From the IMG/VR virus record IMGVR_UViG_3300042566_001780, positions 1 to 64,000 of that record: 64,000 nucleotides of DNA. One strand, 5' to 3'. The position numbers and the translations under genes are program-made. The notes below the pieces were generated by a model that did not search any database, was not told the DNA's origin, and saw nothing but the letters and a program-made list of their open reading frames with translations. Shown here piece by piece: positions 346 through 5,788 of the stretch (position 1 is its first letter; every line of letters begins with the position of its first letter).

Positions 346-511
346 TGCCCGTGTAGTTGAGTGGTAAAAACAGACACTGAGTTGCAGCAATTCTAGACAT
401 GATGCAACAATGCTTTCATAACACGAAGGTAGTAGATCGGCCGGTTTGCTATCTGATTATGAGAGTGTAAAGGTGGAAGGTCGTGGGTTCGAGTCCCTCC
501 ATGGGTAGCCA
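346..511 (+). ncRNA. tRNA-like RNA with ~85-nt structured insertion replacing the anticodon loop
   Basis: Acceptor (T)GCCCGTG/CATGGGT(A), D arm GTT-GAGTGGTAAA-AAC, stem ACACT(374-378)/AGTGT(464-468), T arm GTGGG-TTCGAGT-CCCTC, terminal GCCA; internal 12-bp hairpin 427-454. Confidence 0.75.
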
Positions 512-1217: not shown

Positions 1218-1630
1218 AAATGGCAAAAGCAAGTAACGCCCCAGCAAAGAAGGTCGTTTTTCAAAGAACAGGTTTGTTCAATGACACCTTCGCAAACTAT
1301 GCAAATAATGCTACTGTGACAGCTAAGTTTGAGGATTTCATTGCCTTCAAGCGTCAGAATCCTCTTTTGCCTTATGGTAGCAAAGACGAACATTTCAAGG
1401 GCAATGGTCCCTTAGGTCAATCTAAAGTTATTCACGTTCACTTAACGCATAACGTCAATTTAATCTATAGTCGTGCCGGCAGTAATCCTATGACTATCAC
1501 TTTAATTTGGATTGGCGTTCATGATGAAATGGGCACAGGGCAACCACCAAATGCAAAGTTGCAAAAGAATGCTGCAGCAAAATTCTTAGCTGCTAAACCA
1601 GAAGGAAAAGTTTTTGAAAATGGAAAATGA
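1214..1630 (+). CDS. RelE/YafQ-like ribosome-dependent mRNA interferase
   Basis: Pattern PYGSKDEHFKG...IHVHL..NVNLIY...ITLIWIGVHDEM resembles YafQ KDHxLxG...CHI..D.LLIY...TGSH. Confidence 0.7.
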   Translation: MKMAKASNAPAKKVVFQRTGLFNDTFANYANNATVTAKFEDFIAFKRQNPLLPYGSKDEHFKGNGPLGQSKVIHVHLTHNVNLIYSRAGSNPMTITLIWIGVHDEMGTGQPPNAKLQKNAAAKFLAAKPEGKVFENGK

Positions 1631-1711
1631 TGTAAGATGGTCTCTTACGACTGCCTGCTAAGCAGTTCGTCCAGTCAAATGGATTCGGTTCGATCCCGAC
1701 GTTTTCCGCCA
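1622..1711 (+). tRNA. trnS: tRNA-Ser(GCT) with 8/4 acceptor/T-stem architecture
   Basis: 8-bp acceptor GGAAAATG/CGTTTTCC, 4-bp T stem TCGG/CCGA, 5-bp D stem GTAAG/CTTAC, anticodon GCT, long variable arm TCCA/TGGA, G73, CCA. Confidence 0.85.
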
Positions 1712-1728: not shown

Positions 1729-2403
1729 ATGAAAAAAGTTATTGAGATTAGGCCTGCTGAAGGCGGTGAAGATTCTAAGTTGTTTGTCAGTGATCTGGCA
1801 AACGCATATGTGAAGTTGTCCATGAAAAAGGGCTGAAAGCACCAGCTGTCAGATTGTGATTCTTACACAACAATCACAATTACTGGTCACGATTTGACAG
1901 CTCTATCTCAAGAAGCCGGTGGTCACAGAATTCAGCGAGTACCGCCAACTGAAAGAAAATGTCGGGTACACACATCAACTGTTACTGTAGCAGTTCTAGA
2001 TGGTGATTCTTTAGTTGGCACAATTGCACTAGATCAAAAAGATCTCAAGCTTGAATGGTATTCTGGTACTGGATGTGGTGGCCAAAATCGTAATAAGGTG
2101 ATGGCTTCTTGTAGATTGACGCACGTTCCAACAGGAATTGTGAAAACGTCCCAAACAAGAAGCCGCGAAACTTCTTATGCTCAAGCATTGACTGCATTAA
2201 CTCAAGCAGTCAATGAAGGTTTGACAAAATCAAAGTTGAGCCAATTCAATCAAATTCGTAAGAATCAGGTTGGAAGTGGCGAACGCGGTGATAAAATAAG
2301 AACTTATCGATTTCAAGATGATTCAGTAAAAGATCATCGCACAAACAAAAGTGCTTCTGTTGCAAAAGTAATGAATGGTCATTTTGACCTTCTTTGGAAA
2401 TAA
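1729..2403 (+). CDS. RF1-type peptide chain release factor homolog lacking domain 1, with in-frame TGA at 1834-1836
   Basis: ATG 1729 with AAGGA RBS gives MKKVIEIRPAEGGEDSKLF..., in frame with GHRIQRVPPTE (PxT), GTGCGGQNRNK (GGQ) and GERGDKIRTYRF; the TGA occupies the conserved Trp position of RF1 (xxGW). Confidence 0.88.
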
Positions 2404-2405
2404 TA

Positions 2406-2678
2406 ATGGCTAAGTTGAATGCACGACAAATTGGTGAATTGGAAGCTCGGCAATTCTTGGGTGATGATGTTTGGAAGGCTTACAAAACTGATTATGATCA
2501 GTTGATGGCTTTTCGCAAAACACTTAAGGGAAAACCGACTGAAGAACAGAAAATCATTTTGGCTGCTAATAATGCGTTCATTGATTTTTATGGGAGCATT
2601 TTGTTCCATTCTGCAAGGTTGGCTTCTAGTGGAAAATGTGACTGCACGCGTTGCGGAAAGATTCGCAACGCTAAATAA
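2406..2678 (+). CDS. Hypothetical protein with C-terminal CxCxxC cluster
   Basis: ATG directly after the RF stop; ends ...KCDCTRCGK. Confidence 0.6.
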   Translation: MAKLNARQIGELEARQFLGDDVWKAYKTDYDQLMAFRKTLKGKPTEEQKIILAANNAFIDFYGSILFHSARLASSGKCDCTRCGKIRNAK

Positions 2679-2714: not shown

Positions 2715-3089
2715 ATGAAACTCGAAAACCTCGTTATTGACAAAAAGCCTGATACAAAAGCAGCTACTACTTCTGCTCCAGAGGAAACTCCGGGTGGTGC
2801 CACTGTGATGATCTTGAATGATCCTATCACTCCAGCAGAAGTTGTAGTTGAAGCTATCATGCATGGTACTGGATTGTCGAAACAGGCTGCTATGAAGCGC
2901 ATGATGCGTGCTCATCGTAATGGTTGGGTGCCTATTGCTTCTTATGCTACTAAAGACATTGCTGAAACGATTGCAAACAAAATCGAGCAACACGCTCGAA
3001 ACAATCCGAACTATGACCACTATCGTCCATTTGTTCGTCATAACGGACCTTGGCCGCTAGCTGTTGAAGTAATGGATGCTGAACAATGA
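2715..3089 (+). CDS. clpS: ClpS-like Clp protease adaptor
   Basis: VMILNDPITPAEVVVEAI...MMRAHRNG...YATKDIAETI matches the ClpS core. Confidence 0.85.
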   Translation: MKLENLVIDKKPDTKAATTSAPEETPGGATVMILNDPITPAEVVVEAIMHGTGLSKQAAMKRMMRAHRNGWVPIASYATKDIAETIANKIEQHARNNPNYDHYRPFVRHNGPWPLAVEVMDAEQ

Positions 3090-3658: not shown

Positions 3659-5788
3659 ATGAACAAGCTCTCCATTGCATTTGCAAACAATCTCGCCATC
3701 ATTCCGACCCATGATAATGGCGATACCAAAAATACCGCTCTTGCAATGAGTGTTCAAGCTGAACTAATGAATGTCGGCTTCATGTTGAGCAAAGAAGCTT
3801 TCTCTTATCTTGAGACACGCACTGAGTCTTTCATTGCATCCTTCCATAACGGTATCATTCCTCTTGCAAAATCCGCAAAGGGCGTCACTAGCAAGAAGTA
3901 TTCTCCACTTTGGAAGAACTTCCCAATTGATGTTATGGCTGCATCTGATGCAGAGCTCTACATCACTGCGCTTATCCATTACTGGACTAATGGTACTTGG
4001 TCACCAGACGCGGAGCTGAAGGCTCGCGGTTTTGCTTTTGAAAAGAAAAACTTTATTGAGCTAAAGCTTGCTCCTGAAAATTGGGAGCAAAGTCTTGTCA
4101 ATGATTTGGCGGCTTTCACCAAACCGCTTGATCCCACCAATCTAAATAACCTGGTGTGGCTTGCGCAGAACTGTCAAGTCACCATTCCGGAAGTTTCTGT
4201 CAAAGAAACTATGGCAGCTTTGGCTGTAGCTGGAATTCCAGTGAAGGTGAAATCTCCTGTTGATGTGCTGCGGATTGCAGTCGGCATGTCTGGTGGCGAT
4301 ATGGCTCTCCCTTCTATGCCAAAAATCCCGCAAATGAAGGATAAGAGCTTGATGCGTGGCAGCTACGCATTTAATGCAAAAGTACAAGAAGCTAATGCGT
4401 TGCGTGAAACTTTCAAATTCAAGAAGTTCACTCGAAGCGAACGCCGGTACATCCTTGGATTGCTTGAGTCGCTGAAATTTGTTGATGAAGCAGAAATGCA
4501 GCGTCATCTTGGCCGTTGGGTTCGTCTTGGCGAAGTTCTCCATCCAGGCGAAATGAAGAGCAAGTTTCCAAAAGCAGCAGCTGCATTCTCCAAGATTCGC
4601 AATCAAGAAGAAGTGAAGGTTCGTACCTTTGCTGGTCGTGTTGATCTGGCGTTCAAGCAATCTCCTGATGTTGGTATGCAAGTTCTTCAAGAACGTCCTG
4701 GTGAATTTGCACGTCGTCTTGATGCACTGGTTCGTAATGAAAAGCATGATGCACAGCAGGTGATTGATCGATTTGCAGAAGTTGCAGGCAAAGTGTCGAC
4801 TAAAGTGCTGTTCGAGATGTTTGATCATTTTGAAGGTCGCTTGAAGGACAAGCCGCGTATGGTCATGATCAAGGGTAAAGGTTCCAAGGTTAAGAATCTG
4901 GAAACTCTCCCGAAACTGCCAGATCATATTGTGGAAAATATCCAGAAGATGATCAAGCAACAATTGGCTAATCGCGCTGCAAAGTTGCCAGCAATGGGTA
5001 ATGTGTTTGTTGATGATCAACTGCTGAATATGCCGGTGCCATATTCTATGCAATCCTCTGCAGAGGGTACTTCTACTTTGGTTCGCGGTACTCGCATGCC
5101 AATTGTTGAAGGTGCCAATACACTGCGTGGGTTTGTTCACTGGTATGATGAGAATGGCGATGACGACATTGATTTGTCGGCTACGTTCCTGGGCGCAAAG
5201 TTTGAAATTCTTGGTGAATGTGCATTCTATGATCTGCGGTCCACGAATTTGAAGGCGTATCACTCTGGTGATGTTCGCCATCGTATTGGGCATAATGCAG
5301 AGTACATTGACTTTGATTTGAATTCTGCTAAGGAACATGGTGTCAAGTATGTGGTGTTCTCTGCATACAATTTCAATGGTAATGCCATTAAGTCTGTACC
5401 TGAATGCACCTTTGGCGTGATGGAGCGTTCTAAGCCAAAAAGCAATGAGATCTTTGACCCAGCTACTGCCCCACAAGCTATCAAAGTTCAGGCAAATAGC
5501 AATTCGGTGTTTCCTGTCATGATTGATGTGGAAGCACATGAATGGATTTGGTTGGATCTTGAATCTGAAGGTCGAGGCTTTGCTTCTTTCCATAGTAATT
5601 CTTCTACTCTTGACAAAATCAAGGCATTCACACAACAAGCAAAGTTCAGTGTCTATGATCTGATTTCTCTGCATGTTGGCAGTCGCTCTGGTACCATTGT
5701 GAACAAGATGGAAGATGCTGATCTCATCTATTCGTATGACGACATTGTTCGAAACTATTCGAAACTGACTGAGTTCTTGAACATCTAA
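3659..5788 (+). CDS. ROT/TROVE-like helical protein fused to C-terminal TerD domain (709 aa)
   Basis: Helical N-region with RPGEFARRLDALVR; C-terminal TerD-like segment (W...DDIDLSATF...HSGDVR...AEYIDFDL...YVVFSAYNF); architecture recalled for the Prok-RING_4-associated family, but no RING finger here. Confidence 0.65.
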   Translation: MNKLSIAFANNLAIIPTHDNGDTKNTALAMSVQAELMNVGFMLSKEAFSYLETRTESFIASFHNGIIPLAKSAKGVTSKKYSPLWKNFPIDVMAASDAELYITALIHYWTNGTWSPDAELKARGFAFEKKNFIELKLAPENWEQSLVNDLAAFTKPLDPTNLNNLVWLAQNCQVTIPEVSVKETMAALAVAGIPVKVKSPVDVLRIAVGMSGGDMALPSMPKIPQMKDKSLMRGSYAFNAKVQEANALRETFKFKKFTRSERRYILGLLESLKFVDEAEMQRHLGRWVRLGEVLHPGEMKSKFPKAAAAFSKIRNQEEVKVRTFAGRVDLAFKQSPDVGMQVLQERPGEFARRLDALVRNEKHDAQQVIDRFAEVAGKVSTKVLFEMFDHFEGRLKDKPRMVMIKGKGSKVKNLETLPKLPDHIVENIQKMIKQQLANRAAKLPAMGNVFVDDQLLNMPVPYSMQSSAEGTSTLVRGTRMPIVEGANTLRGFVHWYDENGDDDIDLSATFLGAKFEILGECAFYDLRSTNLKAYHSGDVRHRIGHNAEYIDFDLNSAKEHGVKYVVFSAYNFNGNAIKSVPECTFGVMERSKPKSNEIFDPATAPQAIKVQANSNSVFPVMIDVEAHEWIWLDLESEGRGFASFHSNSSTLDKIKAFTQQAKFSVYDLISLHVGSRSGTIVNKMEDADLIYSYDDIVRNYSKLTEFLNI

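Follow-up and report, generated by a model that had tools for sequence, protein, structure and literature searches.

A truncated RF1-type release factor gene of a giant lake-water phage carries a conserved in-frame UGA and is predicted to be expressed by readthrough

Within the first 64,000 nt of the IMG/VR record IMGVR_UViG_3300042566_001780 (the window, i.e., the whole stretch of DNA analysed here), which derives from a 291.7-kb phage, we examined a short locus downstream of a tRNA-Ser gene. Following a Shine-Dalgarno-like sequence, an ATG opens a reading frame of 35 codons (MKKVIEIRPAEGGEDSKLF...KKG) that runs into a TGA and then continues in the same frame to a tandem TAA. Together, these parts form one gene of 224 codons. 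Mechanical ORF calling splits this gene into a 35-aa ORF and a 169-aa ORF starting at a TTG. The features of the locus are listed below.

Features of the release factor locus (positions in the 64,000-nt window)
Feature	Position	Strand	Remarks
tRNA-Ser	1622-1711		17 nt upstream of the start codon
Shine-Dalgarno-like AAGGAA	1716-1721	+	7-nt spacer to the start codon
Start codon ATG	1729	+	
Coding part 1 (35 codons)	1729-1833	+	First beta-strand and long helix of RF domain 2
AEGGED	1756-1773	+	Counterpart of the RF1 helix tip that, going by established RF1 structures, reads the first stop-codon base
Gating UGA	1834-1836	+	Followed by A at 1837; position of the conserved RF1 Trp
Spacer	1837-1843	+	7 nt between UGA and hairpin
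Coding part 2 (188 codons)	1837-2400	+	Rest of domain 2, domain 3 and domain 4
RNA hairpin	1844-1902	+	18 bp; 5' arm 1844-1861, loop 1862-1884, 3' arm 1885-1902; candidate readthrough stimulator
GGHRIQR	1918-1938	+	Domain 2
PPT	1942-1950	+	Domain 2, PxT-type tripeptide
VHTS	1966-1977	+	Domain 2
GGQ	2077-2085	+	Domain 3
Terminator TAA	2401-2403	+	Followed by U; part of a tandem TAA TAA, 2401-2406

Profile searches matched both parts of the gene to release factor models. The first part matches positions 103-133 of Pfam PCRF (PF03462) and positions 115-145 of prfA, while the second matches PCRF 156-194 plus the RF-1 domain (PF00472; 6.5e-21). When the TGA is read through, the PCRF match becomes one continuous hit of 67.6 bits over profile positions 99-194, with the single TGA inside. 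The best NCBIfam model is prfA (6e-48), ahead of prfB (2e-29), although the scores fall far below the curated equivalog cut-offs for RF1 (TIGR00019 / NF001859; 163.6 bits against 400, and 155.1 against 423). A structural model of the protein, which shows a strand at residues 2-11 and a helix at 13-34, superposes on ribosome-bound RF1 with a TM score of 0.77-0.80. The window's RIQRVPPTERKCRVHTS aligns with RVQRVPVTESGGRIHTS of RF1, and the RF1-type decoding positions, i.e., the first Pro and last Thr of the tripeptide, Gln in RIQR and Thr in HTS, are conserved, whereas the RF2-type residues are absent. The TGA itself aligns with the conserved Trp of RF1 ("KGW" in Thermotoga RF1). In contrast with canonical RF1, the factor lacks domain 1 (about 105 residues): its match starts at prfA position 107-115, and no PCRF positions 1-98 are encoded anywhere in the genome record, which is estimated to be 82% complete.

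A single in-frame TGA at a Trp codon could simply reflect a sequencing error or decay, and the earlier note had suggested looking for TGG in relatives as a test. This test came out the other way. Judged from assembled contigs, the codon is TGA in 80 of 80 related viral loci, in 12 further close-relative assemblies and in three copies in bacterial genomes (standard-code Proteobacteria), and never TGG, TAA or TAG. Such invariance is far more than expected by chance. An independent, ∼95%-identical strain from another study also keeps the TGA; one RNA-library contig spans the site, although this does not prove transcription. Some database proteins of 222-226 aa looked like full-length relatives with a Trp codon, but both that we checked have TGA in the DNA and are code-4 gene-caller artefacts. 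Across 69 distinct full genes, the TGA is invariant while the Gly codon before it and the codons after it vary. Synonymous sites are near saturation (pS 0.74), yet both flanks are under purifying selection, with pN/pS of 0.25 upstream and 0.32 downstream. A search of GenBank phages by megablast found no close isolates; tblastn hits were all below 60% identity, and several of the "phage" records are bacterial contigs, for example a prfA-hemK locus.

The sequence context of the two stop codons differs. At 130 readthrough gates in the family, the base after the stop is never U, whereas the terminal stop is TAA in 137 of 149 distinct genes and is followed by U in 90 of 149; the effect of a U after a stop has been reported previously (PMC5289835). 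In addition, the hairpin downstream of the window's UGA has a minimum free energy of -23.4 kcal/mol (z = -4.43), with 0 of 200 shuffled sequences being as stable. The family shows peaks of synonymous-site conservation at codons +1 to +8 and +24 to +29, and a mean minimum free energy of -29.9 compared to -21.1 for same-protein synonymous shuffles. When the named stem was tested directly, 69% of cells were paired, against 24-51% for slid partners, and 9 of 11 pairs showed double changes. The strain variant G1852A turns a G.U pair into A-U. Note, however, that RNAalifold did not recover a stem near the UGA in an alignment of 18 very diverse sequences, that the stem emerged only from the named-structure and synonymous-shuffle tests, and that the 3' structure is weak at site B of the second clade.

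Intriguingly, sister clades carry other versions of the gate. Some have TGA at other codons, where homologues have I/V or S/K/T rather than Trp. Others, in 31 loci, carry a prfB-like +1 frameshift cassette (GGAGG, a short spacer, then CUU UGA or CUU UAG), which in the GC-rich subgroup lies at the same codon as the window's TGA. CUU precedes the stop in 26 of 28 distinct sites, and an SD-like sequence is found in 17 of 28. UAA is never used as a gate in the family. Altogether, 169 of 173 assessable genes (about 98%) need recoding, and at least 22 changes of gate type were counted on a quick, midpoint-rooted IQ-TREE phylogeny that contains several long branches.

Based on these data, our preferred reading, to which we assign a probability of roughly 0.6, is that the locus encodes a phage paralogue of RF1 whose synthesis is controlled by programmed stop-codon readthrough. 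Ribosomes starting at the ATG would reach the UGA after 35 codons. If host RF2 acts there, only a 35-residue peptide is released; if a near-cognate tRNA decodes the UGA instead, most likely tRNA-Trp and thereby restoring the Trp that RF1 has here, translation continues to the TAA and yields the full factor. In this reading, the UGA is deliberately leaky, and the hairpin is positioned like a recoding stimulator. Near-cognate readthrough of UGA by tRNA-Trp has a precedent in Qbeta (about 5%; PMC7026636). The phage's own tRNA-Trp shows no UGA-reading adaptation, having a normal 5-bp anticodon stem and a C11-G24 pair rather than a Hirsh-type A24 or a 4-bp stem, and no UCA suppressor is present among the 17 phage tRNAs. 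Because the decoding residues are RF1-type (UAA/UAG), the gate would be read by RF2 and not by the product, and output would rise when UGA termination capacity is short. The extra RF1-type activity might then take over UAA stops (39% of this phage's genes) and free RF2 for UGA stops (53%), closing a negative feedback loop on termination capacity in the infected cell. Readthrough itself, the inserted residue, the stimulatory role of the hairpin, the codon specificity and the homeostatic purpose are all inferred. One observation fits less well: TGA and TAG swap between close relatives in the frameshift clade, which is better explained by a factor that reads both codons or by a generic termination sensor than by strict RF2 sensing.

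These results support the core of the earlier note, which had proposed an RF1-type factor gated by an in-frame UGA at the conserved Trp, analogous to but distinct from the RF2 frameshift; given the cassettes of the sister clades, the analogy turned out to be almost literal. The note's premise that the factor does not itself read UGA rests only on the conserved PxT, Gln and Thr residues. Its suggestion of ribosome rescue rather than normal termination is not supported by anything we found; the stop-codon-reading residues are all intact, unlike in PrfH or ArfB, although in relatives the gene sits among tRNA, tmRNA and RNA-repair genes.

The strongest alternative, which we consider possible but unlikely, is direct autoregulation, whereby the phage factor itself recognizes UGA (and UAG), its PPT loop making it omnipotent or shifting its specificity. 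The in-frame stop would then constitute a classical prfB-type negative feedback on the factor's own level. This would agree with the literal prfB-type cassettes in sister clades, the swapping of TGA and TAG, the absence of UAA gates, and the near-invariant PPT (178 of 181 members), which differs from the usual P(A/V/S)T. The phage, which ends most of its genes with TGA, would also benefit from a UGA reader. On the other hand, the conserved RF1-type decoding positions and the overall similarity to RF1 rather than RF2 speak against it, provided that Pro at the first position of the tripeptide restricts the second base to A, as the rule of Ito et al. 2000 would have it. Less likely still, the UGA plus hairpin might act as a fixed-ratio attenuator that sets a low, constant yield of a factor harmful in excess (no RF3-assisted recycling without domain 1). 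Release factor overexpression reduces fitness (PMC12421855), the gate is kept while its form and position are interchangeable, and Qbeta uses UGA readthrough for a fixed ratio (PMC7026636). However, a weak promoter or ribosome-binding site would achieve the same, the persistent use of RF-specific stops and of the prfB sensor cassette argues for sensing, and any readthrough gate is in any case sensitive to release factor level.

We regard two separate products, as annotated by gene callers, as improbable. Half of the distinct genes have no ATG, GTG or TTG within 39 codons after the TGA, and the positions vary in the rest; in the window, TTG 1894 lies inside the 3' arm of the hairpin and has no SD sequence. 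An internally started protein would lack the helix and strands that complete domain 2, and in sister clades the two parts are joined by a frameshift cassette. Finally, error or decay is effectively refuted by invariance across about 95 independent sequences under strong purifying selection, a TGA=Trp code by TGA ending 182 of 343 genes (coding density 0.926 under code 11 and 0.882 with TGA as sense; neighbouring genes of relatives also stop at TGA), and selenocysteine insertion, despite a hairpin following the UGA as in bacterial SECIS elements, by the lack of an Rfam SECIS match or of tRNA-Sec among the phage tRNAs, by homologues with Trp, Phe or Leu and never Cys at the site, and by a loop about 25-50 nt from the UGA with no conserved apical motif.

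Compared to the prfB +1 frameshift (CUU UGA C with an internal SD), the window's gene is likewise interrupted early by an RF-specific stop, but uses in-frame readthrough with a 3' hairpin, and its UGA would be read by a different factor. The site is in domain 2, not at codon 26 of domain 1, and so is not inherited from prfB; moreover, some relatives use UAG, which was never seen in 8,164 prfB motifs (PMC12421855). The Mimivirus/Megavirus class I release factor gene, which needs one readthrough and one frameshift and has been interpreted as autoregulatory (Jeudy et al. 2012, PMC3521657), encodes an eRF1-like factor in giant viruses of amoebae rather than a bacterial RF1-type factor in tailed phages, where the gate type varies across a large family. 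PrfH and ArfB are also short paralogues lacking domain 1, and the gene neighbours found in relatives (Rnl1, a Pnk-like kinase, phosphatases, tRNAs and tmRNA) recall the PrfH-RtcB2 pairing. Yet PrfH has a divergent decoding domain and acts without an A-site codon (PMC9304027), the window's gene scores 33 bits against a cut-off of 166.65 for PrfH (TIGR03072) and 19 against 100 for ArfB, and no RtcB was seen in the neighbourhoods surveyed. Like the Qbeta coat/A1 UGA, the gate would be a leaky UGA decoded by a near-cognate tRNA, and a downstream structure about 8 nt away is known from eukaryotic-virus readthrough signals (PMC7026636, PMC13517186). In those cases, readthrough makes a C-terminally extended second isoform, whereas here the readthrough product is the only one with all the domains; to our knowledge, a structured readthrough stimulator in a dsDNA phage or bacterial gene is undescribed. 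Stop-codon-recoded phages also encode RF1/RF2 accompanied by tRNAs (10.1101/2021.08.26.457843), but they reassign TAG or TGA genome-wide and their release factor genes are reported as standard-code, whereas the present phage is not recoded and the stop appears to be confined to the release factor gene.

Taking a broader view, the gene may belong to a large, previously unrecognized class of phage-encoded, domain-1-less RF1 paralogues with a PPT motif, represented by 227 relatives in a first viral-contig scan, more than 512 in a broader, overlapping second scan, and 3,230 database proteins. Synthesis of these factors would almost always be gated by recoding, either UGA or UAG readthrough at three hotspots or a prfB-like +1 frameshift at CUU UGA or CUU UAG. 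We consider this more likely than not. Autoregulatory recoding of release factor genes is known only for RF2, plus one giant-virus eRF1; a 2016 review and a 2025 survey both state that no RF1 counterpart is known (PMC5009743, PMC12421855). The family would supply one, including UAG-frameshift versions that look like RF1 autoregulation and UGA versions that cross-couple an RF1-type factor to RF2 activity, and would offer a natural comparative series for how readthrough and +1 frameshifting substitute for each other at one site. It would also imply that large phages invest in controlling translation termination, not only in tRNA supply.

The neighbouring 138-aa and 90-aa ORFs of the window have no Pfam, PHROG or PADLOC hit, and gene context in two bacterial genomes (L105 and L106) was uninformative. 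Seven other candidate interrupted genes in this phage gave no family hits, with five scanned against PHROGs and two not examined. A link between gate codon and stop usage of flanking genes gave only a weak trend. Since gene callers split these release factor genes or mistranslate them as code-4 "W" proteins, the family is hidden or misrepresented in databases.

In the 291,687-bp IMG/VR virus record to which the window belongs (linear, estimated 82% complete, 39.7% G+C, assembled from a lake-water metagenome), the reading frame proposed in the earlier note is confirmed: a good Shine-Dalgarno-like sequence precedes 35 codons, an in-frame TGA, and 188 further codons in the same frame. While mechanical ORF calling splits this stretch into a 35-aa ORF and a 169-aa ORF starting at a TTG, profile searches showed the two pieces to be collinear parts of one release factor, the first matching Pfam PCRF positions 103-133 and the second PCRF 156-194 plus the RF-1 domain. 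A search that reads through stops returned one continuous PCRF hit of 67.6 bits with a single TGA inside. Among NCBIfam models, prfA (6e-48) ranked well above prfB (2e-29), prfH (4e-8), and arfB (8e-4). Similarly, the solved structures closest in sequence are RF1 (7e-39), ahead of RF2 (about 1e-22), and in that alignment the stop falls on the Trp of the RF1 KGW motif. An AlphaFold model of a full-length family member (pLDDT 78.8) superposes on ribosome-bound RF1 with a TM of 0.77-0.80 over its whole length, placing residue 36 between the predicted long helix (residues 13-34) and the next strand (residues 37-44). In contrast, domain 1 is missing; nothing in the genome record matches PCRF positions 1-98, and a tRNA-Ser gene lies immediately upstream.

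Coordinates of the interrupted release-factor gene, its RNA element, and other features noted in the window, in the same phage genome (contig G000:C1), and in related loci (L numbers)
Sequence	Coordinates	Strand	Feature
Window	347-507	+	Match to the Rfam tRNA model (161 nt)
Window			tRNA-Ser gene, ending 17 nt before the start codon
Window			AAGGAA, 7 nt before the start codon
Window	1729		ATG start codon
Window	1738-2007		Region matched by a contig from a wastewater RNA-Seq library
Window	1834-1836		In-frame TGA
Window	1844-1861 pairing with 1885-1902		Stem of 18 bp, 7-nt spacer from the UGA
Window	2401-2403		TAA terminator, followed by a second in-frame TAA
Window	2406-2678		Conserved 90-aa ORF of unknown function
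Window	2715-3089	+	ClpS-like adaptor gene (PF02617, 5e-13)
G000:C1	141916-141992		tRNA with anticodon CUA
G000:C1	159621-160007	-	Two coding-like stretches separated by an in-frame TGA
G000:C1	188419-188763	-	Two coding-like stretches separated by an in-frame TGA
G000:C1	206706-207311	+	Two coding-like stretches separated by an in-frame TGA
G000:C1	207356-207823	+	Two coding-like stretches separated by an in-frame TAG
G000:C1	222390-222911	+	Two coding-like stretches separated by an in-frame TGA
G000:C1	231333-232124	+	Two coding-like stretches separated by an in-frame TGA
G000:C1	258183-258533	+	Two coding-like stretches separated by an in-frame TGA
L001-L080 flanks and G000:C1	e.g., L001:613-1077, L001:1359-1862, L001:3964-4509, L003:4219-5118; G000:C1:280771-281394		RNA-repair genes travelling with the short RF gene
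L105 (Pararhizobium sp. BT-229)	3969-4289		Small ORF with an RF-1 (GGQ) domain

The interrupting stop is not explained by an alternative genetic code. Under the standard code, a greedy gene set covers 92.6% of the genome and 182 of 343 genes end in TGA, while treating TGA as sense lowers the coding density. At seven other places in this phage, a single in-frame stop separates two stretches that both score as coding, with no nearby restart codon; the five that were searched had no PHROG hit, and these places may be chance or further gated genes.

Nor is the TGA an error or the mark of recent decay. A profile scan of viral contigs found 227 relatives, and all 80 that were examined carry TGA at exactly this codon, never TGG, TAA, or TAG, as do 12 further assemblies of close relatives. 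An independent strain of about 95% identity, from a terrestrial metagenome of another study, differs at 30 of 628 positions across the region but not in the TGA. A 272-nt contig from a wastewater RNA-Seq library matches the gene across the TGA with one T>G difference whose position is not known, showing that a near-identical phage occurs in wastewater, although it does not prove transcription. Public databases do hold 222- to 226-aa versions of this protein with Trp at the site; however, the DNA of both that we checked reads TGA, these being artifacts of metagenome gene callers switching to code 4 on short contigs. Among 185,579 cellular species genomes, the family is almost absent (6 loci), yet the copies in Pararhizobium and Thalassospira isolates and in a gammaproteobacterial MAG, at 46-48% identity, still have TGA at the same place.

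We next looked for signatures of selection. Across 69 distinct full-length genes, synonymous sites are near saturation (pS 0.74), yet both sides of the stop are under purifying selection, with a pN/pS of 0.25 for the 35 codons upstream and 0.32 downstream. The TGA itself is invariant, while the Gly codon before it (GGC/GGT) and the codon after it vary. Half of the genes have no ATG, GTG, or TTG within 39 codons after the stop, so independent initiation of the second part is not conserved. Intriguingly, the stop contexts differ between the two kinds of stop. At 130 readthrough gates across the wider family, the base after the stop is A (81), C (29), or G (20) and never U, whereas the true terminators of the same genes are TAA in 137 of 149, followed by U in 90 of 149; for comparison, U follows 36% of all stops in the window phage. 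Since a U after the stop is the context reported to strengthen termination (PMC5289835), the internal stop is built to leak and the terminal stop to hold.

Codon-identity analysis revealed the strongest synonymous-site conservation of the whole gene at codons +1 to +8 after the TGA (up to 3.2 times expectation), with a second peak at codons +24 to +29. These are the two arms of a stem, which in the window has a folding energy of -23.4 kcal/mol and a z of -4.43 against dinucleotide shuffles, 0 of 200 being as stable. On 18 diverse sequences, this named stem has 69% of cells paired, against 24-51% when partners are slid, and 9 of 11 pairs change on both sides, which 0 of 500 shuffles reach. Note that the stem was derived from one member of that set and that RNAalifold alone did not find it on the diverse sequences. 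An independent control nevertheless supports it: the 96 nt after the TGA fold to a mean of -29.9 kcal/mol, against -21.1 for synonymous-codon shuffles encoding the same protein and -19.9 for other windows of the same genes, with a mean z of -2.24 and 84% of sequences below -1. In the independent strain, G1852A converts a G.U pair into A-U, while some family members (loci L023 and L059) replace the long-range stem with a local hairpin. No Rfam family, including SECIS, matches.

The wider family extends to GenBank huge phages of 600-735 kb, which carry short PPT-type RF1 genes at about 37% identity. Their in-frame TGAs sit at other codons, where homologues have I/V or S/K/T rather than Trp, and a 50-kb sample of one of these genomes (LR745206) shows no genome-wide recoding. 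Not every record labeled as phage belongs here: the 232-kb entry CAKLQH020000004.1 ("Acinetobacter phage MD-2021a") carries an ordinary full-length prfA-hemK operon and other chromosomal-looking genes and is probably bacterial sequence, and several other short "phage" records look similar.

A second viral scan, seeded with the huge-phage clade, found more than 512 relatives. Sorting loci by gate type, we counted 115 with one TGA (readthrough), 20 with two TGAs (readthrough), 3 with TGA plus TAG (readthrough), 20 with a +1 frameshift at TGA, 11 with a +1 frameshift at TAG, and 4 ungated, while in 8 the N terminus was not found or was misclassified, mostly because it was cut by contig ends. The frameshift sites are textbook prfB cassettes, with CUU preceding the stop in 26 of 28 distinct sites and a GGAGG-like sequence within 12 nt upstream in 17 of 28. 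In the GC-rich subgroup, the cassette sits at the same RRG-L/W position as the window's TGA; in the AT-rich subgroup, it sits at the second hotspot. Gates cluster at three positions, 35/34, 29, and 21/19 codons before the PPT motif, which is itself present in 178 of 181 loci. UAA is never used as a gate, and flanking genes in every class use TGA as an ordinary stop. An illustrative example of combined gating is given by loci L144, L145, and L149, where TGA at the middle site and TAG at site B would make one gene sensitive to both RF2 and RF1.

A quick maximum-likelihood tree placed the window in a well-supported clade of 75 sequences, 74 of which read through at site A; the one exception, L104, has a doubtful N terminus. 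In the sister group, by contrast, the gate types are interspersed, with at least 22 changes and repeated TGA/TAG swaps. Ungated members are rare and are either basal on long branches or nested within gated clades. A gate of some kind is therefore old and persistently maintained, while its form turns over.

Regarding what is already known, one review cites only the giant-virus factor (PMC5009743, PMC3521657), and a 2025 survey of more than 12,000 genomes found no programmed frameshift in prfA and no TAG in any prfB motif (PMC12421855). Work on huge phages and on recoded phages reports phage RF1 and RF2 genes but no internal gate (PMC7162821; 10.1101/2021.08.26.457843), and we found no description of this family or its gates within the literature we could search in full text. 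We therefore consider the gene a previously unreported variant of the regulatory recoding of release-factor genes, and not a member of prfA, prfB, PrfH, or ArfB.

How might the gate work? UGA is terminated only by RF2, near-cognate tRNA-Trp is a natural UGA reader, with Qbeta using about 5% UGA readthrough (PMC7026636), and termination efficiency at an internal stop is what the prfB cassette senses (PMC5009743, PMC12421855). Given one gene interrupted by a conserved, leaky UGA, a selected 3′ hairpin, and equivalence in position and logic to the prfB-like frameshift cassettes of sister clades, we infer that full-length factor is made in proportion to failure of RF2 at this codon. Because the decoding residues of the product are RF1-type, it would not close its own gate directly; rather, by taking over UAA stops (39% of this phage's genes), it would free RF2 for UGA stops (53%), giving negative feedback on termination capacity. 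The interpretation in the earlier note, which had proposed a readthrough sensor analogous to but distinct from the RF2 frameshift, is supported, although readthrough itself, the codon specificity and physiological role of the factor, the inserted residue, and the effect of the hairpin are predicted rather than measured. The main rival is direct autoregulation by a factor that also reads UGA, a possibility favored by the TGA/TAG swaps and the unusual PPT loop but disfavored by the intact RF1-type residues. A simple fixed-ratio attenuator, a split protein, selenocysteine insertion, an alternative code, and a pseudogene are progressively less likely.

The phage has 17 tRNA genes, among them a tRNA-Trp(CCA) without UGA-reading adaptation, but no UCA suppressor and no tRNA-Sec. 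Another of its tRNAs has a CUA anticodon and a weak 3-4-bp anticodon stem, making it an amber suppressor (ARAGORN labels it "Pyl") in a standard-code genome where TAG is the rarest stop (27/343); the RF1-type factor should oppose it at UAG. Near the start of the window, a stretch that ARAGORN did not call matches the Rfam tRNA model (35 bits, above the gathering score) and looks like a tRNA gene interrupted by an insertion of about 85-90 nt, possibly an intron.

In relatives, the gene sits inside tRNA arrays, sometimes beside a phage tmRNA (nearby in loci L002, L013, and L079). Its most frequent neighbors, out of 79 loci, encode a DSP/PTP-like phosphatase (52 loci), a calcineurin-like phosphoesterase (34), a Pnk-like kinase (13), and a T4 Rnl1-type RNA ligase (11), and the window phage has an Rnl1 gene near its other contig end. 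The gene thus belongs to an island of translation-maintenance and tRNA-repair genes, a context that is not evidence for the ribosome rescue function suggested in the earlier note. The ClpS-like gene, preceded by the conserved 90-aa ORF, follows the RF gene both in the window (310 nt downstream) and in its close relatives (L091, L092, and L098). In the bacterial genome of Pararhizobium sp. BT-229, a second small ORF with an RF-1 (GGQ) domain, of ArfB-like size (106 aa), lies about 430 nt downstream of the gated short RF.
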